Shown piece by piece: positions 14,807 through 26,719 of a stretch of DNA of 64,000 nt. The stretch lies in sequence record NC_027402.1. One strand, 5' to 3'. Positions within the stretch are counted from its first letter, which is position 1, and each line of letters starts with the position of its first letter. The translations under genes were made by a program, and so were the position numbers. The notes beneath the pieces were generated by a model, which did no database searches, was not told the origin of the DNA, and saw nothing but the letters and a program-made list of their open reading frames with translations.

Positions 14807-14830
14807 CCTACCTCCCCGAAGGGAGGTAGG
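14807..14830. terminator. Bidirectional terminator ending the radical SAM/tail-fibre operon
   Basis: CCTACCTCCC-CGAA-GGGAGGTAGG with an A tract before and a T tract after. Confidence 0.75.
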
Positions 14831-14847: not shown

Positions 14848-15519
14848 TTACATGCCGAGAGATTCGGACAATGTTTTTAATCCAGTGTAATCGCGCTTTT
14901 CAGCTAACTCACGGATTTGGCGTTTGTTATCTGCCATTGCTGAGTGCAACACCTGGTCACGTGCAACAATAGCGCCCAACAACGCTTTACATTGGTCTAC
15001 TGTAAACGGACTGTGCTTAGTATTCAGCGTATCGAGCCAGTATTCTGGTGCGGTATCTGCCTGAATGTATTGACCGAGGATGGTACGCGACGATTCATCG
15101 GCTTGAAAGTGACTACCTTCAAACTCGATATAACCATGACGCTCATCTTCGTACCGGTGGTCAAGTTCCAACAGCATCTTCTGCACGTCTTCGTAAATGT
15201 AACGTGCGGTAGATTTCAGATTCCCGCGAATTTCGTCGAGGTCAATCTCCAGCACATTAGCAATGAACTCTTTCGTGCGTTTCAATGTGAAGTTAGCTTC
15301 AATCTCCGACATCTCATACAGCTTCATGCGTGCCAGGGCTTCTTTATCAGACATCCCTTCGATGAGATGATAATGGAGCAGAGCGCAAAAGCCTGTACGG
15401 CCCTGATCCTGCGCACCGATTCGTTCCATGAAATTACCGTGACGATCAATCGGCAAATCACGCTGGAAATAACGGGCGCGGATCTCTTCGTTCGTTAAGC
15501 TTTTGTCAGTAACAGACAT
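14848..15519 (-). CDS. Protein with C-terminal DUF4376-like (tail-fibre assembly-associated) domain
   Basis: GYIEFEGSHFQADESSR...WLDTLN....FTVDQCKALLGAI resembles DUF4376 as I recall it. Confidence 0.55.
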   Translation of the reverse strand: MSVTDKSLTNEEIRARYFQRDLPIDRHGNFMERIGAQDQGRTGFCALLHYHLIEGMSDKEALARMKLYEMSEIEANFTLKRTKEFIANVLEIDLDEIRGNLKSTARYIYEDVQKMLLELDHRYEDERHGYIEFEGSHFQADESSRTILGQYIQADTAPEYWLDTLNTKHSPFTVDQCKALLGAIVARDQVLHSAMADNKRQIRELAEKRDYTGLKTLSESLGM

Positions 15520-16061
15520 TCGTCCTCCTCAATCAGGCCAAGTTCTAACAACAAACCGAAGTCCAGCATCTGGAAGTCCTGATCGAGGTTACCGGCCCAC
15601 AACAGAGAAATGTTGTGTTGCTCTTCTTCTTCCAACTGCGGGAGCAGGTGTTCTTCGAAGATTTGACGCTCTGTGTAATAAGCGTCAACCGGGTTATTGG
15701 AGCGTAAGTTACGAATACGCATCCGCGGGAAAGACAAGCCCAAAGCCACTAAACTTTCAGGACTGGCTTCATCAATAGAGTGACGTAGCAGTTCGATTTT
15801 GTGGCGTGGGTATGCAAGCAGTCGCTTCTCAAAGCCAGGGTTGCGCTTTTCGATTTCCGCGACAGACTCGTGTCCTTTCTCAACGCAGTAGACCGGGATC
15901 ATCACATTCAGCCCGTATTTAATCAACAGGCTTTGGATTTCATCAGTGAAGTCTTCCCCTGCCACAATTGCGTGCACATTGTACAGCTTGCTTTTGCGCA
16001 GGAAGCGATCGACCAAGTGCAGTTTACGCTTCGTAAAATTGTGAATCAGTATTGACTTCAT
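15495..16061 (-). CDS. Hypothetical protein in radical SAM operon (188 aa)
   Basis: Start moved to MKSILIH (GGAG SD); overlaps both neighbours. Confidence 0.6.
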   Translation of the reverse strand: MKSILIHNFTKRKLHLVDRFLRKSKLYNVHAIVAGEDFTDEIQSLLIKYGLNVMIPVYCVEKGHESVAEIEKRNPGFEKRLLAYPRHKIELLRHSIDEASPESLVALGLSFPRMRIRNLRSNNPVDAYYTERQIFEEHLLPQLEEEEQHNISLLWAGNLDQDFQMLDFGLLLELGLIEEDECLLLTKA

Positions 16062-17352
16062 TCTGGGCTCCGTTTTGTAATTTTTCTGCTTCAGCACGTT
16101 GGCGTACACAACGTGAACAATAGCACATGGATTTATCATGCAAATCTGATGCGCGGGTCGTACCAGTTTTCTGATACCAATATTCCGCCGCCATCAGCTT
16201 CGCAGTAGTCCAACCACACTGACGACGCTCGGCGTGATACGCTTTACGGTCTTCCAGTGTACCTTCACCGTTTTCGTACGATGCTGCTGCGCAGCTACCG
16301 CAGCTGTGTTTCATCGGACACCCTAAACAGGTTTCTGGGTAGTTGGTGTACTGCGTTTGAATCTCTTCTAACAGCTTACCACCGTCCAGGCTCACAAACT
16401 CACGACCGACCAGTTCTGCTACAGCAGAACGGGAAGTTACCGTGGACATGAAACGGTTACAACCGTAAATCTTGCGATCAAAGCCGAGACAGGTCATGTG
16501 CGTCAACGTACCGCAGTACGGTTTCAGGCGTTCTGGGTCGAGACGAACAGAGTCGTCATGTAAGAGTTTGTCACGCCAATCCGGGTCCCAAGTTGCCATA
16601 AAGTTCAGGCCATCCGGGATGATGTGTGTAATCGTGTTACGCGGGTTGGTGTGCAGACCCTTCTCAATCCAGTAGTCCATCACGTCCATCATCTGGTTCG
16701 CGATATCCAACGCCATATGGCGCGGCAGGATATCTTCGTACGTTACGTTACCAGAAATGGTACCACCGCCGGACATGTCAATTAACGATTTCATGCTGGC
16801 GGCATAGTGCGGCAATGTATCGATCGTAAACGTCGCCTTTACGCCCAGTTCAGCGATGCCAACACTCTTCAGATAATTGTAACCGCGTACCGCAGCTTCG
16901 TACGACCCTTCACGCGTCGTGGTAAAGATACGATATTTGTCATGGACTTCAGGTAAACCATCGATGGAGACCCCAATAGACAGTTTGTCTTTCCAGCGCT
17001 CGATAATTTCTTTGTTCAGCGGACGGTCCAGAAGTGTACCGTTCGTGGAGATACTGAACATATACGGGCGATTGTGTTCTGCGCATAACTTCTCTGCGGT
17101 TTCAAAGGCCGCCAAAAGAAGTTTAGGCTGCATGAACGGCTCACCACCGATGATATCGATGATGACTTCAACGTTCGGGATATCTTTATCACGCTCGAAA
17201 CAAGCGTGGATAAAATCAATCACGTCTGCTACTTTGTTGTTACGAGGATATTTACGCTCGTAGCAGTATTCGCAGTCCAGGTTACATGACAGGTTAGTCA
17301 CAACCTGATACGTGCGTGGTGTGTACTGGATTTGCTGTTCGCTGTTACTCAT
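16024..17352 (-). CDS. Radical SAM/SPASM peptide maturase, CXXX-repeat-target type (TIGR04115-like)
   Basis: CNLDCEYC (CX3CX2C), GGEP, STNGTLL, SIDG; SPASM-type YCG..C....IYGC...CLGCPMKHSCGSC...C. Confidence 0.9.
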   Translation of the reverse strand: MSNSEQQIQYTPRTYQVVTNLSCNLDCEYCYERKYPRNNKVADVIDFIHACFERDKDIPNVEVIIDIIGGEPFMQPKLLLAAFETAEKLCAEHNRPYMFSISTNGTLLDRPLNKEIIERWKDKLSIGVSIDGLPEVHDKYRIFTTTREGSYEAAVRGYNYLKSVGIAELGVKATFTIDTLPHYAASMKSLIDMSGGGTISGNVTYEDILPRHMALDIANQMMDVMDYWIEKGLHTNPRNTITHIIPDGLNFMATWDPDWRDKLLHDDSVRLDPERLKPYCGTLTHMTCLGFDRKIYGCNRFMSTVTSRSAVAELVGREFVSLDGGKLLEEIQTQYTNYPETCLGCPMKHSCGSCAAASYENGEGTLEDRKAYHAERRQCGWTTAKLMAAEYWYQKTGTTRASDLHDKSMCYCSRCVRQRAEAEKLQNGAQNEVNTDSQFYEA

Positions 17353-18259
17353 TGTTCGCCGCCCGTTTACGCTTAGCAGAAATTACACGGTTGATGTAGT
17401 TATACGCATCAACGCCGATAGAACGCGCCAGGCGATTACAGCCGACTTCCAATATCTCTGGCGCGTTCTGAATTTGCTCCTGCGTACCGTCGGCGTTAAG
17501 CCACAGCACTTCACTGCACGTGTTGCACTCGGTATCGAACATTTTACTGATTGCAAGCCCACATTCAGAATCGTTCTGCATGTTAAGGCGTTCGATATTG
17601 TCGAGTATTTTCCAATACCCGTACATGAAGTTCATGACGTGGTCCGGCGATAACGGTTTCGGCATCATCGCATCAAACAACAACGACACACCACCTGGAC
17701 GGTAATGATAGATTGCTCGGTGCAGCTCGATGAAATCTTCGTACCAGCGTTTATCACCTAACTGGTCACGCGTCATCACACCCCAGGTGTAATAGTTGTC
17801 CAGCTCGTACAGCACTTCCAGCGCTTCATGATTACCACCGTTTACAAAGTTCATAAACGGACGTTCCGACTTCTTGTAGCCGTCAATGGACACAAAGATA
17901 AGGTCGAACTGTTTCAGCAACGGCAGATGTGATTTACGCATCTTTAAACCGTTGGTGTACATGTGATGACGGAGGTTCGGATGAGACTCCTTCAACTCGT
18001 TCACGAAGTCTTCAATCTTGCGCTGCGCTAACAGCGGCTCACCACCCGTCCAATGAATCTCACCGATATCCGGATTCTTCTCTAAAATCGAGAGAATCTC
18101 TTCACGTTGAAACTCACGAGAAGTATCTTCTCTATCCATGTAATAAGCCCCTCCACAGAAGCTACAGTCTAAGTTACACTTAGAAGTTGCGACAACCGAC
18201 AGAATTGACGGTTTGTCGTACAGTTCAGACGAGATCCTGGATTCTACTTGATCTGTCAT
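17345..18259 (-). CDS. Second, shorter radical SAM enzyme
   Basis: CNLDCSFC, WTGGEPLL, YTNG, VSIDG; only CNTC...C at the C-terminus. Confidence 0.88.
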   Translation of the reverse strand: MTDQVESRISSELYDKPSILSVVATSKCNLDCSFCGGAYYMDREDTSREFQREEILSILEKNPDIGEIHWTGGEPLLAQRKIEDFVNELKESHPNLRHHMYTNGLKMRKSHLPLLKQFDLIFVSIDGYKKSERPFMNFVNGGNHEALEVLYELDNYYTWGVMTRDQLGDKRWYEDFIELHRAIYHYRPGGVSLLFDAMMPKPLSPDHVMNFMYGYWKILDNIERLNMQNDSECGLAISKMFDTECNTCSEVLWLNADGTQEQIQNAPEILEVGCNRLARSIGVDAYNYINRVISAKRKRAANNE

Positions 18260-18280
18260 TGCAGGTTGCTCCAGTATTTT

Positions 18281-19168
18281 TTAAATATAATCAATGGCGA
18301 ATAAAGGATCTTCGTCTACATTAGCGCCAGGCACCAGTAACATCGGGTCGTGATAGGCAGCTAAAATTTTGTTCAAGTCGGCATGTCTTTCGTTCAAGCG
18401 TTTCAAATCGGCCAACGTTACCGAACGACTACGAATCTCAGAAACAGCTTCTGCTTCTTCTTTCGTTAAATCCACCTTCGTTAAGAGGAAGCTTACCAGC
18501 TTACTCAAATCCGCTTCTGTCGCCGGGTAGTCCCCATATCGGGTTTGAACCAGGTGTTGCATCCACGGCTTACGAATGCGTTTGGTGATTTCAAAATCGT
18601 CAGTCAACGCATACCAGACAGAACGCTTTTTATCCCACACGAACTTATAGCTATACGCCATCATGTCCGCTAAACGGGTGATGCCGAGTTCTTTATATCC
18701 CTCGATATCGATGTACGGTTCGGTGTCGAAATACGTTTCCGTATCGGCAGGTACCAGTACAAAGTAGTAAGGGAACGAGCCCAGATAGTCCGGACTCCAC
18801 CAACGGCGCGCCATCGGTTTTGCTTCGAGTTCGTCAAACGGTGTAAACATCAGTTCTAAATCGACACTGTTGTTCAGAATCCCTTCACTGAAGAAATACT
18901 TACCGTCAACCAACACGCCGCGAGAGTTACCATCGCCGTTAAAGATAACGATGGCCTCTGCAACCATATCACGGATCTTAAACGTATTTTCTACGGTGTA
19001 GTTCTTCTTGTCGGTCAAGAAGCGACCACGAACCTTTGGCCACTCACCAGGAATCTGTGCAATCAGTCTGACTTTGTCAGCGAGGTGTGCACGCACCGAA
19101 TCTGGGGAAGATAGATGCAGCGGGTGGTTGAATGTGGTTTTATACGCAAGATGCAAATCGTTTTTCAT
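18281..19168 (-). CDS. Hypothetical protein between the CXXX peptides and the radical SAM genes
   Basis: 295 aa ORF with GGAG SD; no family recognised. Confidence 0.6.
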   Translation of the reverse strand: MKNDLHLAYKTTFNHPLHLSSPDSVRAHLADKVRLIAQIPGEWPKVRGRFLTDKKNYTVENTFKIRDMVAEAIVIFNGDGNSRGVLVDGKYFFSEGILNNSVDLELMFTPFDELEAKPMARRWWSPDYLGSFPYYFVLVPADTETYFDTEPYIDIEGYKELGITRLADMMAYSYKFVWDKKRSVWYALTDDFEITKRIRKPWMQHLVQTRYGDYPATEADLSKLVSFLLTKVDLTKEEAEAVSEIRSRSVTLADLKRLNERHADLNKILAAYHDPMLLVPGANVDEDPLFAIDYI

Positions 19169-19190
19169 TTAATACTCCGAACGTTTTCTG

Positions 19191-19397
19191 TTATCGATTC
19201 CCCGCTCCACGGCTACAGCTTCCGCTGCAGGACCAGCTACACCCACCATTACAGTTATAGTGAGAAAGCGGTAAGCCAGCCAGGTTATTTGTGGTCGACA
19301 CGGTGCCCTGGTTAGCGATATAGTTGTTTGCCTGTGCGGTTGTAATGTAACCTTCTGCCGTAACGAGACGGTTTCGAATAGTCTTGAGACTGATCAC
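19191..19397 (-). CDS. CXXX-repeat precursor-like peptide 3 (68 aa, 4 Cys)
   Basis: GGAGG SD and GTG start; 48-aa leader ISLKTIRNRL..., core CNGGCSWSCSGSCSRGAGNR. Confidence 0.8.
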   Translation of the reverse strand: MISLKTIRNRLVTAEGYITTAQANNYIANQGTVSTTNNLAGLPLSHYNCNGGCSWSCSGSCSRGAGNR

Positions 19398-19412
19398 ATA
19401 AGCCTCCGTCAG

Positions 19413-19817
19413 TTAGGAGTTAGGACCTGAACAACCACCAGAGCACGCACCTGAGCAGTTTGCGGAGCAGGATTTACCACAACCCCCAGAACAGCTGCCT
19501 GTGCACGTGCCGCTACAACCACCAGAGCACGAAGAGCTACAGCCCGTGCAGCTGCTGCTACAGCCTGATACACAGTTTGCCGAACAAGTCGACCCACAAC
19601 CGCCCGTAGCAGACCCAGTACATCCGCCAGAACAACTCGAGCAACTAAAAGAGCATGTTCCACCACAGTCATAGTGCGAACGACCTTGACCTGCGAACAA
19701 GTCAGCGTTATTCGTAGCTTTATTGCGAATGTAGTTTTGCACATTCGTGGTATTCTTTAGAGCGTTTGCATCGATCGTGTTTAATCGGTTATTCAGTTCT
19801 TTTAATCCAATTGCCAT
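19413..19817 (-). CDS. CXXX-repeat precursor-like peptide 2 (134 aa, 20 Cys)
   Basis: 50-aa leader, then a Cys/Ser/Gly core starting CGGTCSFSC. Confidence 0.88.
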   Translation of the reverse strand: MAIGLKELNNRLNTIDANALKNTTNVQNYIRNKATNNADLFAGQGRSHYDCGGTCSFSCSSCSGGCTGSATGGCGSTCSANCVSGCSSSCTGCSSSCSGGCSGTCTGSCSGGCGKSCSANCSGACSGGCSGPNS

Positions 19818-19827
19818 TTAATCCCCC

Positions 19828-20220
19828 TTAGCGACCTGAACAGCCGCCGGAGCAGGCCCCGGAACAACTGGAAGAACATGAGCCACCGCAACCACCTGTG
19901 CAGTTACCGGTACAGCTACTACTGCAACCACCAGAACAACCAGAGCAACCAGAACAGTTACCGCCACACGTCGAAGAACAGCTACCGATACAAGAAGCAG
20001 AACAGCTTCCTGAACAGCTCGAACAGCCATGCGAGCAACCGTTAGAGCACGTCCAAGAACATGTCCCGCCGCAATCTAGCTGTGCTTTCGTCCAACCCCC
20101 AAATCGGTCTGCCGCGTTATGGGCTTTAGAGGCCACTTGCGCGTCGATACGGGGGCCTGTCGCCATGTTAGCTTCGACTATCTGGACGCGGTTTCTGACG
20201 TCTTTAATAGATATCGCCAT
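19828..20220 (-). CDS. CXXX-repeat precursor-like peptide 1 (130 aa, 21 Cys)
   Basis: AGGAAG SD; 49-aa leader, then a Cys/Ser/Gly core starting CGGTCSWTC. Confidence 0.88.
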   Translation of the reverse strand: MAISIKDVRNRVQIVEANMATGPRIDAQVASKAHNAADRFGGWTKAQLDCGGTCSWTCSNGCSHGCSSCSGSCSASCIGSCSSTCGGNCSGCSGCSGGCSSSCTGNCTGGCGGSCSSSCSGACSGGCSGR

Positions 20221-20241
20221 TACGCTTCCTTAAAAAGTAGA

Positions 20242-20278
20242 ACGAGCGGACTATGTCCATAAACATAGTCCGGCTCGT
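20242..20278 (-). promoter_or_regulatory. Long bulged hairpin immediately upstream of the CXXX peptide genes
   Basis: - strand ACGAGC-C-GGACTATGT-TTATGG-ACATAGTCC-GCTCGT, then TCTACTTTTT; contains TATG twice. Confidence 0.55.
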
Positions 20279-20285
20279 AAACAAG

Positions 20286-21488
20286 TTACTTAGTACCCGC
20301 TTCAGCTTGAACATCGTCGCGCGAGGTGAGGTTGTTGTTGACGTGAACAGCAGCCTGCACAACACCGCCATACTGTTTATGGAGGTAATTCGGGTGTGGG
20401 TTATCCGCAGCCGCATGGTTCGCCAGATTCTGGTTTGCCTGCGAAATTGCGTTGGTGTTGTTTACAACCTGAGTTTTAAGACTGTTGATTTGTCCTTGCA
20501 GGTTATCAATTTGCTGTTGGAAGTCTTTGCCCTGATTCTCAAGATCCGTGACGCGCTGATTCGTTTCATTCAGTGCAGACTGAAGATCGTTAACCTTCTT
20601 CTGTAATTGCAACACCAGAGAATTAAGGTTAGCTAATGCTAACGACATTTTCTGGTAATTTTGAGCAACTACATTAAGCTGGTCGTTCCACGCGGCTAAC
20701 GAAGCCACAACTGCATCGATGCGTTGCCCCAACGCCGTGTCTGCTGCTCTTAAGTCGCCGATATCTTTGATGGTGGCGTCAATGGCAGTCTGTACACTTT
20801 GAATCAAAGCACGAATCTCCGTCTCCGTCAGGCCATTAACCTGATGAATGTCGAGATTGTGTACGTTACCTTCGGCGTTGATGTGGGTATTTAAGGCATC
20901 GAGGAAGTCGTTTTTCAGACCGTCCAGAATACCTTTAATTTCTTCCAGCTGTACTGCAGAGCCGGAGTTAATCGCATCTTTAATCCCCGCGAGTACGGTA
21001 ATGATATACTCAAAACCGTAGATATCGCCAAGGTCTTTATACGTCGGTGCGGACGGGAACGTATCGGGTACGTTCCGAAGATCCTTGAAGTCCACCACAC
21101 GGTCTTCAATTTTCAAAGATGCAATCGCTTGTCGGATGCCTTCGACGTTCGCGGACTGAAAACCACCAACGACTTGCGCAGAGACTTCGATATCAGTAGG
21201 AATGGCCGAGTTAGTTACCACCACACCCATGACCACTTCGCGGTTCTTGGTCATTTTCTGATATGCAGTATGTGCAAAAATCAGCTCGTAGTCTGTACCG
21301 CGTTTGTACGGGTAGACACCTGGTTTATTCGCAGCCGCCAAGCGGAAGGTATCCGCGTAGAAAGCTCCGTCAGGAAATGCAAAAGCCCGGTTAACTTTAC
21401 CAGAACCTAACGTAATACGCCGCGTAACGGCGTTCGACGTTAATGTCCCGGTAAGGTCAAGCGGGTACTGATAAATGATTTCGGCCAT
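20286..21488 (-). CDS. Coiled-coil tail-fibre-like protein (400 aa)
   Basis: Start moved to MAEII (AAGGAG SD); YPLDLTG N-terminus like the large fibres, long heptad region, HAAADNPHPNY fibre motif. Confidence 0.7.
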   Translation of the reverse strand: MAEIIYQYPLDLTGTLTSNAVTRRITLGSGKVNRAFAFPDGAFYADTFRLAAANKPGVYPYKRGTDYELIFAHTAYQKMTKNREVVMGVVVTNSAIPTDIEVSAQVVGGFQSANVEGIRQAIASLKIEDRVVDFKDLRNVPDTFPSAPTYKDLGDIYGFEYIITVLAGIKDAINSGSAVQLEEIKGILDGLKNDFLDALNTHINAEGNVHNLDIHQVNGLTETEIRALIQSVQTAIDATIKDIGDLRAADTALGQRIDAVVASLAAWNDQLNVVAQNYQKMSLALANLNSLVLQLQKKVNDLQSALNETNQRVTDLENQGKDFQQQIDNLQGQINSLKTQVVNNTNAISQANQNLANHAAADNPHPNYLHKQYGGVVQAAVHVNNNLTSRDDVQAEAGTK

Positions 21489-21535
21489 TGCCAAACTCCT
21501 TTGATTGGGGCTTCCTTGCCCCATAGCGCCATCTG

Positions 21536-24500
21536 TTAGGTACGGAACATAAGATTGACCTGGATAACATCAGGCTGTTGACGTCCTCTCTCGTTCACCC
21601 AATCATGCGCAATCGTTAACGTAAGATTATCGCCATCCCACGACATGATCGGCGGTGGGAATAAACCCTGAGCACCTGTGGTAACAACCGGGATTGCACC
21701 TGCCACATTCGTAAACGTATAGCTACGACTGTTCAGAACAACCGGTGTGCCGTGGGTCTCTCCCGGATGTGGTAAGATTTGAATCTTACTATCCGAAAGA
21801 TCGGTGGTGATTGGTAGTCCCCCAGCGTCCGTGAAAAGCCAAGAGCAAATATGCTGTTTAGCTGTTTCGAGCGCTGAAGAACTTACCGACGCGACAAACG
21901 TAAAGGTGCACGGCACGCCTGCTGGCAGAGAGTGCTGTTTGTGGTGCACGGTATGTGGTGACGGCAATAACACTTCTGGGTTTTCGTCAATGTTAACATC
22001 CGTACCTTCCGCTTCGACGTTGTAGAAAAAGCCATCCACCGCCTCCCATGGGGCAACGTGGACATTAAAGGTCGTTTCTACTCCCGGTGTACCTGGGACG
22101 ACGAATTTACTTTGCACCACCACCATCAGGTTTGTTGAAGTCGGAGCGAAAGCGGGCGTTGGAATACCTACCCACTCCATTCCCAACGATGCCGCTTCAC
22201 CGTTCTCATCGGCCGTTACCGTCGCAATTGTTGTAGGATGTTTCCAAAACGCCCCCGACTTGTTTGCCTGAGTAAACGCCGGCAAAGTTTTCAAGCCTTC
22301 GAAACGTTTGGACACCATCGCTTTACCGCGACGCTGTGCGTCAGATACGGTATAAAGCAACTGACTATCTAGATAGCCTTTCGTAGCATCGACTGACAAA
22401 GGACCCATCGCTTCTTTACGCAATGGTGCCAGTCTGCCCGTTGCTGCATCCCTTCCCACTTCCACATCATGCTTATTCTCAACCGCCGCATGTTCCAACA
22501 GCTGTTTTACCGCCCCCAATCGCTTAGCATGGTCGACGTTAGTCTCGACGACTCGCGACGAGCCCGTTTTAACATACCCGATGTATAGTTCCGTTTCAGT
22601 GTCTGGATGTTGAACCACGTCCATTACGTACTTCGGTGTACCATTTTCTACCTTAGCGTGCAGGTAGAATGTCCGGTTCTGATGGTTTGTTGGAAATGCT
22701 TCGCTGAGGTCAATATACCACGTAGGCAGCTTATAAGTGCTCGAGCCGAAACGCAGGTTAACTTCCTCAGTCACATATACCAGCCAACCTTCGGCTGTTT
22801 CCACACCAGCAATGACGACCGATTCAGTCGGGCCACTAAAATTAGGAGCCGTAACAAAATCTCTCGACGACGTTGCGATACCACCACAGTAGACGTAGTT
22901 GAGAGATGAGTTGTGCAGCATCACCTGATCACGATGAGCCAGATAAGCTGGGCTGACTGGAGTGTGTGACGGTGCCATACGCCCAACGCCGTGTGGAGCA
23001 GAAGAACGCGTCCAGGTACCATTAGACAGCGTAAGACCAACAGCGTAGTTAAGCGCACCCAAGTCGCCAATCTGCTGCAAAGTTAACGTGTGTGGAAGAT
23101 ACAACCCGAACTGCGTACCATCTACCGACACCAAGGTAGGTTGTCCCGGCCGGCGTGTTTTTCCTCCCGTTATCTCACCCAACGTAGCGTACTTCAAGCC
23201 ATAGTCGAGGTTGTTATAGAAGTCAAACAATGTCAATATCGCCGCGGGGAATGTTACCTGCCCGTTGCTGATTGTTGGTTTCAGTGTAAAGTAGTAGATA
23301 TCCAACACGTTAACATTGTTCACAGTACGTGTACATGCTACTTGTGCTAATGTGAGCGGTGTGGCTGTACCGATACCGATGAACCAAACGGAGAACAGTG
23401 CCTTTCCTGCGTTATTTGCGGCAAGGATATATTCCGAAGCATAACCATTCGCAGCGCCTGCCGGTGCTCCGTCGATGATCATCTGCTTCATCTTATTCCA
23501 TTCAGCTTGTGACAGCGTCAATCGATCGGCATGAATCGTGAAAGTGCCGGAAACGTTGTGGTAAGGGAATGTTTCTGGTCCTGTGCAATACCAGCCGTTT
23601 AACTCTGTACCAGGCGACGCCGGTGTAACAATGTGGCACATCTGCGACAGATTCTCATACGTGATAGAATCTACTAGACGACGATTGTTAGTTGGGCCAT
23701 ACCCCGCCTTACCTGAGTAAGTGGTGTTCGGATCAAACTCAACTTCAATTGCCAAGCGGGAACGCGGCTGTGACAACCAGATAAGTCTGGAATCCGCTCC
23801 CAGAGTCAGCGGATACGCCATACCCAGCTCGTAGATAGAACCACGTCCCTGGTTTAACGTTACCACACTAAACCTTCTGGCAGTGAAGTTGTAGTCGCAC
23901 GACAGGTACTCGTACCAACTCACACCGTCATCTAACGTTGTAATCACGACAATTGGCATTAGGTCACGATCGCCGGCATGTCCTTGCGAAACGATATATT
24001 TGTCTTGCGATGTTGCAAAGGTTTGGTTATTAGCTTGACCTTCGCCCCACTTCCGGCTCGGAATCCCAATCTCAGCACCACCGTTATAACGAACCGCGGT
24101 AAGATCAGCCACAATAGGGAATCGATCGGCACCTTCCAGCGTTACCGTCATTGAACTGCAATCAACAACAAAGCTTGACACCCATTGTTTAAAGTTAATA
24201 GTTTGCCCTGTAGTAGAAGCAAACCAGACTGTTGGCGTTAAACCAACACGAAAGTTCAGCCCATCCACAGCAATCGCGTGATTACATTCCGGACCATGTA
24301 CAAAGTTGGTTGCATTGTTCCACTTCGCTAACGCGTCTGCGTAGATCTGTGTAACTGGTGCTGGGAGCGCATCGGAAGGTGCACGTTTCTGTCCCTGTCG
24401 CAGATAAACGTTTTCACCCGACGTTAATATCCCGCCTGTTAACGCATCCGCCACAAACGTGTTGCTACCACCCGGATTAAGTTCGTTGAGTGCGATGCTA

Positions 24501-26719
24501 CGCATACTCACGAAATAGTTACCGGAGGTAAGCACCGTACGCAACAGGTAGACACGTTCATTACAAACAATCAAATCGTCTGTAGAAGCGTTTGGAGCCC
24601 ACGGTGCTGTCGTTACTGTGCCCGCACCATTACCGTTCTTGTAATCACCCAACACCACTTTAACAACACGATGATGTTTTGCATGGTCAATCGTCCCATC
24701 GAAGATGACCAAGTAGTACGCACCGTCACTGCCTAAGCAGATCATTGCATCTGTACCGGTAATCACAATAGCAACCAGATTCACCCCAGGATACGCCGAC
24801 ATTCCAGCGGGTCGATAACGTACGGACGTCTGCTGCATATTTTCCAGCGTATTGCTTGGCGACACATCAGCATAGGCGTAATAGATAGCCCAGTCACCAG
24901 GTGGGTTCCCGTTAGAACCGTTACGGAGCGAGTAAACCTTACCAGACTCGTAACGCGCCAAACCTTTCTGCCAGGTTTGGTTTTTGGTATACCCTTCGTA
25001 GTTCCCCTGGACAGGTATAGGCAAGAAGTTATTGTTGCCGTACGATGATCCGCCGACAGTCCACGCCGGTAATAACGTAGCAATCTTGTCATTCAGCATG
25101 TCAATCTTCTGTTCAAGCAAGAAGCCTTGACGCGAAGTGACCATCTTATCCGAGGTAGTGTCGATTGCATCCCACAGTTTAGCCAAACCTGTAACAGACG
25201 TGGATGCGTACGGCACGTTATCGAGATCGGCAATGGTGTGGGTGTGCGTTGTAAGCGCTTTGCCTGATAGCACGGTGCGCAACGCATTAGTAACCGGTTT
25301 CTCCAGCGGTCCGGTATTGTTCATCTTCTCAATACCGAAATCTGCCGCGGTTAAGGTCAGATGCATCTGCCCGTTTGAATCTAATACAAACCCTTTACCG
25401 TTGACTGTATACGTGTCGTCCACATATCCGTCGAGTTTGTTCTTCAAGTCAGTAACAGCTTTTTGGGAAATCGCTGTGGACGCTGCAGCGGACGCCGAAA
25501 GGTTAGTAATCGCAAACAAACCCTGCACAGTTGTGGTTGCTGCAGGCAGCTCAGCATTCATGTAAAGTTTGTTTGTTTCTTTACCAGAGCCGTAAATCTT
25601 CAACGTGTCGCTGGACTTGAAGTAGGCGTTTGCTGGAAGTATCTTCACCGAGGTCAAGTACATCTTAACCATATCCGGCGTAACGAGATACACGCTGTTA
25701 TACACAGGTGCAAGCACACCTGCATCATAAGCGCCCCACTTGTCACCTGCTTTACCCGAGTGAACCCAAAGCGTGTTCAGACCAGCACTGAACTCCGTAG
25801 CGATACCCGGTTCGTTGTTATCCTGGTCAGCTTTTAATACCAGCGGTTTTGTCGAGGTGATGATGAACTTCTCACCCTTCATGCTGATAACGTGACCAGA
25901 CGTTGTTTGGAACGTAATCGCGTCGTTATTCAGAACACGCATACGGCCCAGTAAATCACCCAGGGTATTATCCAGAAGCATGTCAACGTGTTTCTGTTGG
26001 ATGCCGCTGGTAGACATTAACGTCACTAGCTCTGCCAGGGTACGTCCGAATGCCTTAGTCGCATCTACGGCTTTGCCGAGTACCGGGAGAGCGCCAATGT
26101 CACCGCAGGTGTAACCATGTGCATTTTTAATCAGATGGTGTTGATACATTTCGTCATCAAACACCTTTTTACCGTTCTGATAAATCAAATCGGTAACTTC
26201 CGCAAAAGCCTCATCCAGTTCGTGGGCACGTTCTAAAATACCCAGACGGATATCTTCCAACGCCTTTACGATTTCATCGCGAAGAATCGCTTCTTCGAGG
26301 TCTTTTGGCGGGTCGATTGGCGAGATAATCGGCGGATATTTCATCAGCTCAGACCAATCGCAGTTACGCGGGTCTTTCATATCTGTCTTAACCAGATACT
26401 TGCCGATTTCAGAAGCAGGGATGCGATACTGTCGATCAACCGACAGTAACTCGTATTCTACCTCTGTGGCGTTCAGCAGCATTATGCTGCCGTATATTGC
26501 ATCGTTCTCAGCCTCGGCTAATTCCTGGAAGTAATGTCCTAAGAAATAATCGAGACCTTCTATTAACTTGCGTTTGGTTCCGGTTGTTTTATCGGTAACG
26601 GTTAACGTTAACCCGATGCGATAGAACGGTGCTTCGACGGGAATGACCGCCGAATAACGGTTCGGGTAAGTAGCGGTACTGAGCGTACCGTTAAACTGCG
26701 CCGCATCTTCTCTCGGCAT
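21536..26719 (-). CDS. Giant tail-fibre protein (about 1727 aa; phiKZ gp145/gp146-like)
   Basis: Start moved to MPRED (AGGAG SD); APFY, PAATTTVQGL and PYASTSVTGL fibre repeats, HTH motif. Confidence 0.75.
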   Translation of the reverse strand: MPREDAAQFNGTLSTATYPNRYSAVIPVEAPFYRIGLTLTVTDKTTGTKRKLIEGLDYFLGHYFQELAEAENDAIYGSIMLLNATEVEYELLSVDRQYRIPASEIGKYLVKTDMKDPRNCDWSELMKYPPIISPIDPPKDLEEAILRDEIVKALEDIRLGILERAHELDEAFAEVTDLIYQNGKKVFDDEMYQHHLIKNAHGYTCGDIGALPVLGKAVDATKAFGRTLAELVTLMSTSGIQQKHVDMLLDNTLGDLLGRMRVLNNDAITFQTTSGHVISMKGEKFIITSTKPLVLKADQDNNEPGIATEFSAGLNTLWVHSGKAGDKWGAYDAGVLAPVYNSVYLVTPDMVKMYLTSVKILPANAYFKSSDTLKIYGSGKETNKLYMNAELPAATTTVQGLFAITNLSASAAASTAISQKAVTDLKNKLDGYVDDTYTVNGKGFVLDSNGQMHLTLTAADFGIEKMNNTGPLEKPVTNALRTVLSGKALTTHTHTIADLDNVPYASTSVTGLAKLWDAIDTTSDKMVTSRQGFLLEQKIDMLNDKIATLLPAWTVGGSSYGNNNFLPIPVQGNYEGYTKNQTWQKGLARYESGKVYSLRNGSNGNPPGDWAIYYAYADVSPSNTLENMQQTSVRYRPAGMSAYPGVNLVAIVITGTDAMICLGSDGAYYLVIFDGTIDHAKHHRVVKVVLGDYKNGNGAGTVTTAPWAPNASTDDLIVCNERVYLLRTVLTSGNYFVSMRSIALNELNPGGSNTFVADALTGGILTSGENVYLRQGQKRAPSDALPAPVTQIYADALAKWNNATNFVHGPECNHAIAVDGLNFRVGLTPTVWFASTTGQTINFKQWVSSFVVDCSSMTVTLEGADRFPIVADLTAVRYNGGAEIGIPSRKWGEGQANNQTFATSQDKYIVSQGHAGDRDLMPIVVITTLDDGVSWYEYLSCDYNFTARRFSVVTLNQGRGSIYELGMAYPLTLGADSRLIWLSQPRSRLAIEVEFDPNTTYSGKAGYGPTNNRRLVDSITYENLSQMCHIVTPASPGTELNGWYCTGPETFPYHNVSGTFTIHADRLTLSQAEWNKMKQMIIDGAPAGAANGYASEYILAANNAGKALFSVWFIGIGTATPLTLAQVACTRTVNNVNVLDIYYFTLKPTISNGQVTFPAAILTLFDFYNNLDYGLKYATLGEITGGKTRRPGQPTLVSVDGTQFGLYLPHTLTLQQIGDLGALNYAVGLTLSNGTWTRSSAPHGVGRMAPSHTPVSPAYLAHRDQVMLHNSSLNYVYCGGIATSSRDFVTAPNFSGPTESVVIAGVETAEGWLVYVTEEVNLRFGSSTYKLPTWYIDLSEAFPTNHQNRTFYLHAKVENGTPKYVMDVVQHPDTETELYIGYVKTGSSRVVETNVDHAKRLGAVKQLLEHAAVENKHDVEVGRDAATGRLAPLRKEAMGPLSVDATKGYLDSQLLYTVSDAQRRGKAMVSKRFEGLKTLPAFTQANKSGAFWKHPTTIATVTADENGEAASLGMEWVGIPTPAFAPTSTNLMVVVQSKFVVPGTPGVETTFNVHVAPWEAVDGFFYNVEAEGTDVNIDENPEVLLPSPHTVHHKQHSLPAGVPCTFTFVASVSSSALETAKQHICSWLFTDAGGLPITTDLSDSKIQILPHPGETHGTPVVLNSRSYTFTNVAGAIPVVTTGAQGLFPPPIMSWDGDNLTLTIAHDWVNERGRQQPDVIQVNLMFRT

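Follow-up and report, generated by a model that had tools for sequence, protein, structure and literature searches.

Cysteine-repeat proteins in the tail-fibre operon of Salmonella jumbo phage SPN3US are probable substrates of a radical SAM enzyme

What use would a lytic jumbo phage have for three tandem cysteine-repeat proteins encoded next to a pair of radical SAM enzymes in the midst of its tail genes? The question arises from a window of 64,000 nucleotides (the whole stretch of DNA that was analysed) of record NC_027402.1, the genome of the Salmonella phage SPN3US. The three open reading frames lie on the minus strand and are here termed pep1 (19828–20220, 130 aa), pep2 (19413–19817, 134 aa) and pep3 (19191–19397, 68 aa). 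The SPN3US annotation omits all three, and the annotated SPN3US_0166 (19409–19744) is a wrong-frame ORF that overlies pep2. The trio is nonetheless made up of real genes, because each has a strong Shine-Dalgarno site 5–7 nt upstream (AAGGAAG, AAGGGGGA and GGAGG), dN/dS ranges from 0.1 to 0.24, and the trio is kept in 22 of 22 related loci. Intergenic gaps within the operon span 10–65 nt, no strong terminator lies inside the stretch from pep1 to gp161, and gp161 is followed by a strong bidirectional terminator hairpin (14807–14830) with a 10-bp stem, 7 GC pairs and a T run on both strands. pep1, pep2 and pep3 belong to the tail-fibre operon of SPN3US and are transcribed together as late genes.

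Each protein is composed of a conserved N-terminal region and a C-terminal cysteine-repeat core. The N-terminal regions, termed leaders in a first-pass annotation of the locus, can be aligned end to end, which bears out its view that the three proteins are paralogues. Direct reading and counting agree with it on the leader lengths of 49, 50 and 48 aa ahead of the first Cys, on the Cys counts of 21, 20 and 4, and on pep3 having a GTG start and only the first four cysteines. All three cores begin with C(G/N)G(T/G)CS(W/F)(T/S)CS, which is part of a longer junction motif, N-x-x-L-x-G-x5-Y-x-C-x-G-x-C-S-W-x-C-S, that follows the helical conserved N-terminal ~50 aa and precedes a core unit of the form C-(S/T)-G-(G/S/T). 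pep1 has 20 consecutive Cys spacings (17 CX3 and three CX2) and pep2 has 19, again nearly all CX3, the exceptions being two CX2 units and one seven-residue gap, CTGSATGGC. The earlier description of these breaks and of the Ala at a Cys slot in the gap was accurate, and the slot holds Cys in the CR5-like phages. The fraction of Asp plus Glu is 0.000 across 36 cores.

In a six-frame translation of the window, long (C-X2-3) runs are confined to the trio (78, 56+16 and 13 aa). The one additional run, at 21672–21707 (12 aa, 4 Cys), is of chance size since shuffled windows contain a mean of 0.56 minimal 4-Cys runs; the cysteine-repeat runs of the trio are not due to chance. Within the window, a profile of the leader by itself matches only these three ORFs (E 1e-22 to 1e-24). 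An AlphaFold2 model of pep1 from a 26-sequence alignment (pLDDT 42) contains two N-terminal helices only, with no fold predicted for the core. A Pfam search of the three peptides gave no match; relatives of the peptides carry a precomputed match to PF27846 (tSAM_targ_Cxxx_rpt).

Downstream of pep3 and on the same strand lie gp165 (18281–19168), rSAM2 (gp164, 17345–18259) and rSAM1 (gp163, 16024–17352), and the three peptides always occur together with these genes. rSAM1 is a 442-aa radical SAM/SPASM enzyme in which the three radical SAM cysteines and seven SPASM cysteines are invariant. Its nearest PDB entry is the thioether-forming SPASM enzyme CteB (thermocellin sactisynthase, 5wgg), matched over the radical SAM core at E 3e-10. 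The match starts at residue 22 of rSAM1, with the radical SAM motif from residue 23, and at residue 106 of CteB, behind an N-terminal leader-binding domain, so rSAM1 has no fused RRE and lacks this trait of sactipeptide maturases. rSAM2 (304 aa, phrog_1802) matches Pfam Radical_SAM at E 1e-15 and combines the motif C28-x3-C32-x2-C35 with four C-terminal cysteines; its database gene model begins at Met41 and has therefore lost the motif. gp165, a 295-aa accessory protein (phrog_8030, E 7e-151) found in 58 unnamed clusters, is a neighbour of the trio in every case. Its AlphaFold2 model (pLDDT 86) has no match in a Foldseek search of the PDB (best E 0.47) and no RRE-like fold.

The closest named relatives of this arrangement belong to the CXXX-repeat radical SAM target system, which Haft and Basu reportedly defined in silico in 2011 and which, to our knowledge, has never been characterised biochemically. 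The searchable literature on SPN3US, CXXX repeats, the TIGR accessions and SPASM with tail fiber yielded nothing on the present system. The CXXX system comprises the targets TIGR04114 and TIGR04117, the radical SAM maturase TIGR04115, a second maturase, TIGR04119, and a small protein, TIGR04116. As in SPN3US, its targets consist of small-residue C-X-X-X units in tandem, and a SPASM radical SAM enzyme is encoded alongside in the same orientation; such repeats are long in pep1 and pep2. The TIGR04114 repeat profile scores pep1 at 19.6 and pep2 at 17.1 bits, both below the cutoff of 20 that a bona fide target narrowly exceeds (20.5), and does not match pep3. TIGR04115 is the best NCBIfam match of rSAM1, at 125.6 bits in two stretches and far under the curated cutoff of 350 (members score 389–650); over its full length rSAM1 is 23% identical to a bona fide member, and it is a divergent relative of the maturases for CXXX-repeat targets. 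The accessory genes differ, being a true second radical SAM protein and gp165 in place of TIGR04119 and TIGR04116. The 25 top-ranking families listed for proteins of the operon do not include TIGR04119, and BLASTP finds no relation between rSAM2 and a cellular TIGR04119 protein (E 3.5). No operon protein matches TIGR04116, and gp165 was ruled out as a protein of this type, its profile aligning to a TIGR04116-type alignment with an hhalign probability of 0.2%. SPN3US differs further in its three paralogous targets of fixed size and in the distinctive junction motif C-x-G-x-C-S-W-x-C-S. Judged by sequence, pep1–3 are divergent members of the TIGR04114/TIGR04115 system.

In a quick enzyme tree, in which a long branch leads to the SPN3US group, rSAM1 falls within a clade of CXXX-associated radical SAM enzymes (SH-aLRT 96). 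The clade has 30 entries, made up of all 11 phage enzymes and 19 genome loci. A CXXX ORF was detected in 17 of these loci but not in the other two, one of which is on a short contig. One sister-group locus also has a CXXX ORF; the remaining genome loci lack one except for L110, whose enzyme is not placed on the tree. The pairing spans phages, Bacillota, Bacteroidota and Margulisiibacteriota, and such near one-to-one co-occurrence is the signature of an enzyme and its substrate. pep1–3 are very probably substrates of the neighbouring radical SAM/SPASM enzyme. The co-occurrence also weighs against a different idea, that the cores are structural or metal-binding domains held by disulfide networks, metal or Fe-S and that the radical SAM pair acts elsewhere, for example on a small molecule or one of the fibre proteins. 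NCBIfam curators define the CXXX protein and the enzyme as target and maturase, and two radical SAM enzymes would be needless for disulfides or metal sites. In favour of such domains, CXXX repeats of small residues resemble those that crosslink collagen-like fibres, and one homologue has a collagen-like N-terminus. When the peptide and leader alignments were searched as profiles against the PDB, no match was significant, the sole hits being the Cys-rich domains of NOWA (E 0.4). Minicollagens and NOWA of cnidarian nematocysts carry a C-X3-C-X3-C pattern on collagen-like or fibrous proteins and gain mechanical strength through sulfur crosslinks; the shared pattern is an analogy only, as theirs are disulfides made with no radical SAM enzyme. 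Also in favour of such domains, Bacteroidales homologues of the CXXX proteins are Tat substrates, and the Tat route is used by folded or cofactor-bearing proteins. On balance an unmodified Cys-rich domain is very doubtful.

If the cysteines are crosslinked, the chemistry can be compared with that of known maturases. rSAM1 matches the PapB family second best, over nearly its full length but at 113.6 bits against a cutoff of 340. PapB, which matures PapA to freyrasin and is grouped with the ranthipeptide and SCIFF maturases, has like rSAM1 a SPASM architecture without an N-terminal RRE, and it crosslinks repeated short Cys motifs in line. PapB joins Cys to Asp in C-X3-D motifs, whereas the phage cores hold no Asp or Glu; PapB-type Cys-Asp chemistry was therefore rejected, and a PapB-like locus falls outside the CXXX clade. 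A precedent for several Cys thioethers in a permanent protein subunit is the SPASM enzyme QhpD, which acts on QhpC, the gamma subunit of quinohemoprotein amine dehydrogenase; its family, TIGR03906, is among the family matches. That system differs in having no phage link, a much weaker similarity and a dedicated leader peptidase. Its thioether acceptors are Asp and Glu.

The first-pass annotation took the trio for RiPP precursors. In the classical form of this scheme, a host or other protease would cut off the ~50-aa leader after crosslinking, and free Cys-ladder peptides would be released at lysis as an antimicrobial, signal or anti-defence factor. The leader/core layout beside a radical SAM/SPASM enzyme fits this, as does the fact that the nearest named relatives of rSAM1 (PapB, SCIFF maturase and CteB) are RiPP maturases. 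Some cellular loci also resemble true RiPP clusters, with CXXX peptides of 66–80 aa and an ABC exporter (L049 and L058) and a radical SAM-TIGR04119 fusion among them. The SPN3US operon is unlike a typical RiPP cluster, in that family and domain searches of 14848–21524 found no peptidase or transporter and the operon lies in a tail-fibre module. The leader, on whose conservation among homologues the RiPP reading had been staked, is kept, with dN/dS of ~0.2. That it is disposable is contradicted by homologous segments located internally in other phage proteins, behind tail-fibre or collagen-like domains. In pep3 the leader is under purifying selection while core cysteines are lost (2–3 remain in the CR5-like phages), and some pep3 orthologues (P0017 and P0027) bear an extra globular C-terminal domain.

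The size and order of the trio are moreover fixed inside a structural operon of lytic phages. Over the 22 loci, which represent three phage genera, pep1 measures 127–131, pep2 130–142 and pep3 68–69 aa, with 21, 20–23 and 2–4 cysteines respectively. The graded cores had been taken as a sign of repeat expansion, and this idea was rejected because each protein keeps its length and Cys count throughout the three genera. pep1 matches phrog_6085 at E 7.5e-41; all 21 of its cysteines are invariant in 18 orthologues and its core has a dN/dS of 0.10. Strong conservation of exactly 21 cysteines suggests a defined final structure. What endures of the RiPP reading is the paralogy, the conserved leader and the probable role as radical SAM substrates, whereas the disposable leader, the typical cluster and the graded cores do not, and free peptides as the final product are unlikely.

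Where such a structure might be used is indicated by the surrounding genes. The trio is placed between gp167/gp168, which encode virion tail proteins, and a tail chaperone region. Directly upstream of pep1 is gp167 (20286–21488, minus strand, phrog_2163), a coiled-coil tail protein for which 85 spectra were obtained from purified virions (PMC5694885, Suppl. Table 1), and upstream of it in the same orientation is gp168 (21536–26719), annotated as a 188-kDa baseplate/tail-fibre protein and resembling phiKZ gp131 (PMC5105663, PMC5694885). The published SPN3US virion proteomes contain the flanking gp167–173 as virion tail proteins and list none of gp161–166. They are based on the annotated protein set only, so that the unannotated pep1–3 could not be found in them.

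Loci of independent phages repeat this context. In a P2-like locus (L037) the order is baseplate J, gpI, fibre, a 401-aa CXXX fibre, radical SAM, a phrog_8030 protein, radical SAM/SPASM and sheath. This is the same four-part cassette as in SPN3US, set between fibre and sheath genes, and the CXXX unit is here the C-terminal domain of the 401-aa tail-fibre-like protein. Two bona fide CXXX loci likewise lie in prophage tail modules, L045 and L030, the latter in the order tape measure, Dit, Tal, collagen fibre, CXXX protein, radical SAM and holin, and two further CXXX loci adjoin collagen-like tail fibres. BLASTP found no relation between gp165 and a 192-aa prophage protein. Temperate phages commonly carry cargo genes downstream of their tail-fibre genes, and position alone is therefore weak evidence for L030 and L045. 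In fusions, the part of phrog_6085 from position 5 to 128 matches the C-terminal half of proteins whose N-termini are of tail-fibre (phrog_5073, phrog_4120) or collagen-like type. The phrog_5073 N-terminus is found in four such fusions (P0035, P0045, P0049 and P0050), and in P0046 a collagen-like N-terminus stands ahead of the leader-plus-core unit. Several of the fibre-like homologues are on contigs too short for gene context.

The absence of gp161–165 from virions fits assembly or maturation factors, and the modified peptides might themselves be such factors, acting as a transient scaffold, chaperone or template for the folding or trimerisation of the fibres gp167–170. Many tail fibres need dedicated chaperones whose genes directly follow those of the fibres, and pep1–3 adjoin a region for tail assembly chaperones as well as gp161 (14848–15519, minus strand, 223 aa), a DUF4376 protein (Pfam E 5e-9) encoded by the last gene of the operon. 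Covalent presence of the homologous CXXX unit in fibre-like proteins would be unusual for a chaperone unless it were auto-cleaved, and the strict 21-Cys conservation points to a final structure, which together make a non-virion assembly factor improbable.

The favoured reading, which we hold at about even odds, is that pep1–3 are proteins associated with the tail fibre and that the radical SAM enzymes crosslink their Cys ladder. It is proposed that rSAM1, drawing on two auxiliary clusters in addition to its radical SAM cluster, would convert the Cys thiols after translation into a series of thioethers of the sactionine or ranthionine type, joined to nearby Ser, Thr or Gly carbons, while rSAM2 and gp165 would help rSAM1 or add a second modification. 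The product would be a rigid ladder able to withstand proteolysis and changes in redox state. As for the N-terminal region, it may act as a recognition handle for the enzymes and also be kept for oligomerisation or attachment, as a module homologous to a fibre-protein stalk. From a crosslinked ladder and a retained stalk-like N-terminal region we infer small proteins of the tail apparatus that are accessory to the fibres or form a tip, and not secreted peptides, possibly in the form of a pep1:pep2:pep3 hetero-oligomer.

A broader and more tentative proposal is that radical SAM enzymes build a thioether ladder domain into tail-fibre proteins, with RiPP-type chemistry serving as a structural virion modification. 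The trio of SPN3US-like phages would assemble through the N-terminal regions into a hetero-oligomeric mini-fibre of two crosslinked 21-slot Cys rods and a third chain, short or domain-bearing, that is swappable for host-range variation, and gut Bacteroidales would export the same domain by dedicated Tat systems. We know of no other radical SAM peptide crosslinking that builds part of a virus particle, so if the proposal holds this would be the first such case and the first biological role for the CXXX-repeat family; the variable third chain, pep3, may then matter for host recognition. A rigid Cys ladder that is genetically encoded and enzyme-installed would also be a useful building block for protein engineering. 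Amber-mutant genetics and virion mass spectrometry are available for SPN3US, and E. coli can serve for co-expression of the enzymes. The leaders of pep1–3 include tryptic peptides free of Cys, which makes them accessible to mass spectrometry irrespective of the fate of the core. In this genetic model jumbo phage three conserved genes were missed and a neighbouring enzyme was annotated without its catalytic motif, and both gaps would have kept these proteins out of all published proteomes. Between rSAM1 and gp161 the operon also encodes gp162 (15495–16061, minus strand), a conserved 188-aa protein for which a family search found no match, and gp161 and gp162 are syntenic in 18 of 18 IMG/VR loci.

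Pep1, pep2 and pep3 are encoded by three tandem paralogous genes on the minus strand, each comprising an N-terminal region of about 50 aa, the leader, followed by a Cys-repeat core. Pep1 (19828-20220; 130 aa) has 49 residues before its first Cys, 21 Cys and three CX2 units, pep2 (19413-19817; 134 aa) has 50 residues, 20 Cys and two CX2 units, and pep3 (19191-19397; 68 aa) has a GTG start, 48 residues and 4 Cys; window coordinates equal those of the record of Salmonella jumbo phage SPN3US (genus Seoulvirus) minus 124000, the two sequences being 100% identical. All three cores open with C-x-G-x-C-S-W/F-x-C-S and in pep2 an Ala occupies a Cys slot within CTGSATGGC; the first-pass annotation had read leader lengths, Cys counts, CX2 units and both motifs exactly. 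In a six-frame translation of the window, long Cys-repeat runs are confined to pep1-pep3, an extra 12-aa, 4-Cys run at 21672-21707 being of chance size (shuffled windows average 0.56 minimal runs), and a leader-only profile matches the three at E about 1e-23 with no further match in the window. Each gene is preceded by a Shine-Dalgarno site (AAGGAAG, AAGGGGGA and GGAGG). Comparison of 17-18 distinct orthologues of each paralogue shows variation in the third position of essentially all codons, Cys codons alternate between TGT and TGC with the Cys residue itself constant, and dN/dS is 0.10-0.24 in the leader as well as the core, so that the leader conservation first proposed is borne out by the alignment of homologues. 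These are real genes overlooked by databases. All three are absent from both SPN3US records (GenBank and RefSeq), where the sole CDS annotated at this site is SPN3US_0166 (RefSeq gp100; 19409-19744, minus strand), a different-frame ORF over pep2 that the low-complexity Cys/Ser/Gly codons of the gene allow to stay open. Pep1-pep3 are annotated in some related phage records, and all match phrog_6085, a PHROG of unknown function.

The trio was compared across 22 related loci from Seoulvirus, Erskinevirus (Stratton), Derbicusvirus (CR5) and IMG/VR contigs, whose orthologues of the radical SAM/SPASM enzyme rSAM1 are 63-100% identical. Gene order is invariant, and pep1, pep2 and pep3 measure 127-131, 130-142 and 68-69 aa and contain 21, 20-23 and 2-4 Cys, respectively. 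In pep1 all 21 Cys columns are invariant and the residues in between vary within the set Ser, Gly, Thr, Ala and Asn. CR5-like phages have Cys in the Ala slot of pep2, and in the same clade pep3 has lost two Cys and kept its N-terminal region. The graded cores had initially been taken to suggest repeat expansion or different mechanical or binding roles, but since sizes and order are constant in the 22 loci the three lengths are fixed features rather than stages of such a process. Two IMG/VR relatives (L008:2542-3453, plus strand, and L023) carry an extra 303-aa paralogue of the small radical SAM protein rSAM2 between pep1 and pep2, with its CNLDCSFC motif intact, and therefore have three radical SAM genes each. 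In several SPFM phage records (LR535901-LR535917), window positions 15500-21600 are matched only as ~40 short pieces (40% coverage, >99% identity) and the homologues of gp165 are shortened or anomalous (228-284 aa), which suggests that these records carry many frameshift-type sequencing errors.

rSAM1 (gp163) is a 442-aa protein encoded on the minus strand. Its CX3CX2C motif occupies residues 23-30, and all seven SPASM cysteines are present and do not vary when the protein is aligned with distant relatives. The best family match of rSAM1 is TIGR04115 ("radical SAM peptide maturase, CXXX-repeat target family") at 125.6 bits against a cutoff of 350, the PapB family scoring 113.6 bits (cutoff 340), and over its full length it is 23% identical to a bona fide TIGR04115 enzyme. 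The closest solved structure is that of the sactisynthase CteB, which unlike rSAM1 possesses an N-terminal leader-binding domain. In a quick tree of 86 related enzymes, on which the SPN3US branch is long, one clade (SH-aLRT 96) unites all 11 phage enzymes with 17 genome loci bearing a CXXX ORF and two in which none was detected, one of these lying on a short contig; inside the clade, a subclade (SH-aLRT 99) joins the SPN3US group to the P2-like locus L037. The CXXX-bearing locus L063 is placed in the sister group, and among the other genome loci a CXXX ORF is present only in L110, whose enzyme is not placed on the tree. That enzyme and CXXX ORF occur together almost one to one makes it very unlikely that the cores are disulfide or metal-binding Cys-rich domains untouched by the radical SAM enzymes.

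Downstream of the trio lie five same-strand genes, gp165, rSAM2, rSAM1, gp162 and gp161 (DUF4376), with overlaps or spacings of 10-22 nt. A strong bidirectional terminator at 14807-14830, formed by a perfect GC-rich hairpin of 10 bp plus a T run on each strand, separates gp161 from the convergent plus-strand gene gp160. rSAM2 (gp164; 17345-18259, minus strand; 304 aa) is a true radical SAM protein with the motif C28-x3-C32-x2-C35; the SPN3US records (SPN3US_0164, RefSeq gp102) start it at Met41 (window 18139) and so omit the cluster motif, and the annotation of phage SPAsTU gives the full 304-aa ORF. gp165 (18281-19168, minus strand; 295 aa) belongs to phrog_8030 and yields a confident AlphaFold model (pLDDT 86, pTM 0.81) in which a beta-sheet domain precedes a helical bundle. 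No Pfam domain or named relative was found for it, the model matches no PDB fold at E < 0.4, and the predicted fold may be new. Upstream of the trio are gp167 and gp168, both virion tail proteins in published SPN3US proteomes, in which none of gp161-166 was detected (PMC5694885, Suppl. Table 1). That the trio serves as a transient assembly factor is quite improbable.

The CXXX family occurs in three kinds of context. In Clostridia and Halanaerobiales (L049, L058) peptides of 66-80 aa accompany an rSAM-TIGR04119 fusion, a TIGR04116 protein and an ABC exporter, which is a classical RiPP layout. In Bacteroidales (Segatella copri, L064:8446-12470; a Bacteroides MAG, L052:8338-12368) the CXXX protein measures 166-209 aa and bears a twin-arginine signal, and the cluster encodes its own TatA and TatC beside TIGR04115, TIGR04119 and TIGR04116 genes. 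The third context is that of phages. A siphophage-type prophage (L030) encodes tape measure, Dit, Tal, a collagen-like fibre, a CXXX protein, two small proteins, a TIGR04115 enzyme (389 bits), holin and endolysin, and a myophage-type prophage (L045) encodes baseplate, fibres, a 376-aa CXXX protein, a small protein, an rSAM and endolysin. In two IMG/VR contigs (L038, L040) the CXXX/rSAM pair adjoins collagen-like tail fibres. On the P2-like contig L037, baseplate J, gpI and fibre are followed by a 401-aa protein that is homologous to tail-fibre/minor-tail proteins and has phrog_6085 as its C-terminal domain; then come a small rSAM, a member of the gp165 family (phrog_8030), an rSAM/SPASM enzyme and tail sheath. 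The four-part cassette of L037 is that of SPN3US, although the two phage types are unrelated.

A profile of the leader and first four Cys finds only 38 proteins among 1.84 billion representatives. In leader-profile and pep1 searches about a dozen proteins of 185-313 aa match at their C-terminal end and not at the N-terminus, phrog_6085 positions 5-128 (leader and core) aligning to the C-terminal half. The other, N-terminal half is of tail-fibre type (phrog_5073, phrog_4120) or, as in P0046 with its G-x-y repeats, collagen-like. The junction N/D-x-x-x-L-x-G-x5-Y-x-C-x-G-C-S-W-T-C is almost invariant across these fibre-type homologues, several of which come from contigs too short for neighbouring genes to show. 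Some pep3 orthologues of SPN3US relatives (P0017 on a 222-kb contig, P0027 in two independent samples) carry an extra C-terminal domain, of 140 aa in L041:6001-6633 and 80 aa in L042/L043:6001-6444, in otherwise syntenic jumbo-phage loci. In fibre proteins the N-terminal module usually serves for attachment and is conserved, and the distal parts vary. From these architectures the leader would be more than a leader. The RiPP precursor layout of the first-pass annotation finds an echo in the cellular relatives, but with no peptidase or exporter in the operon, and with the "leader" lying within the C-terminal half of fibre-type proteins, a true RiPP with a cleaved leader is unlikely.

The favoured reading is a crosslinked, tail-associated product. 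The nearest characterised relatives of rSAM1, namely PapB, the SCIFF maturases, QhpD and CteB, are all known to make Cys thioethers, and the dedicated Tat systems suggest that the Bacteroidales products are folded or crosslinked before export; for both reasons rSAM1 is predicted to convert the Cys thiols of C-(S/T)-G-x units into thioether crosslinks. Neither Asp nor Glu can be the acceptor, since both are absent from the cores. rSAM2 and gp165 may assist or add a second step. The N-terminal region would act as an enzyme handle and as a retained oligomerisation or attachment segment, and the products may belong to the gp167-170 fibre apparatus as small accessory or tip proteins. AlphaFold did not fold the core, and the alignments for structure prediction are shallow. 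A pep1:pep2:pep3 hetero-oligomer is speculation, based on the three co-linear leaders of equal length and the 21 Cys slots in each of pep1 and pep2.

The CXXX system is already known, solely as an in-silico NCBIfam/TIGRFAM system (TIGR04114-04119), and no experimental work on it was found in the literature searched, where its link to phage tail fibres also appears undescribed. The SPN3US variant falls below the curated thresholds, has gp165 and another true radical SAM enzyme in place of the TIGR04119 and TIGR04116 partners, and combines a fixed trio of targets with a distinctive junction motif and a tail-fibre operon setting. By far the largest targets seen are proteins of ~670 aa with 112-122 Cys beside a CXXX-clade rSAM in Margulisiibacteriota (termite-gut Termititenax; L060:6390-8408, L061:3868-5874).
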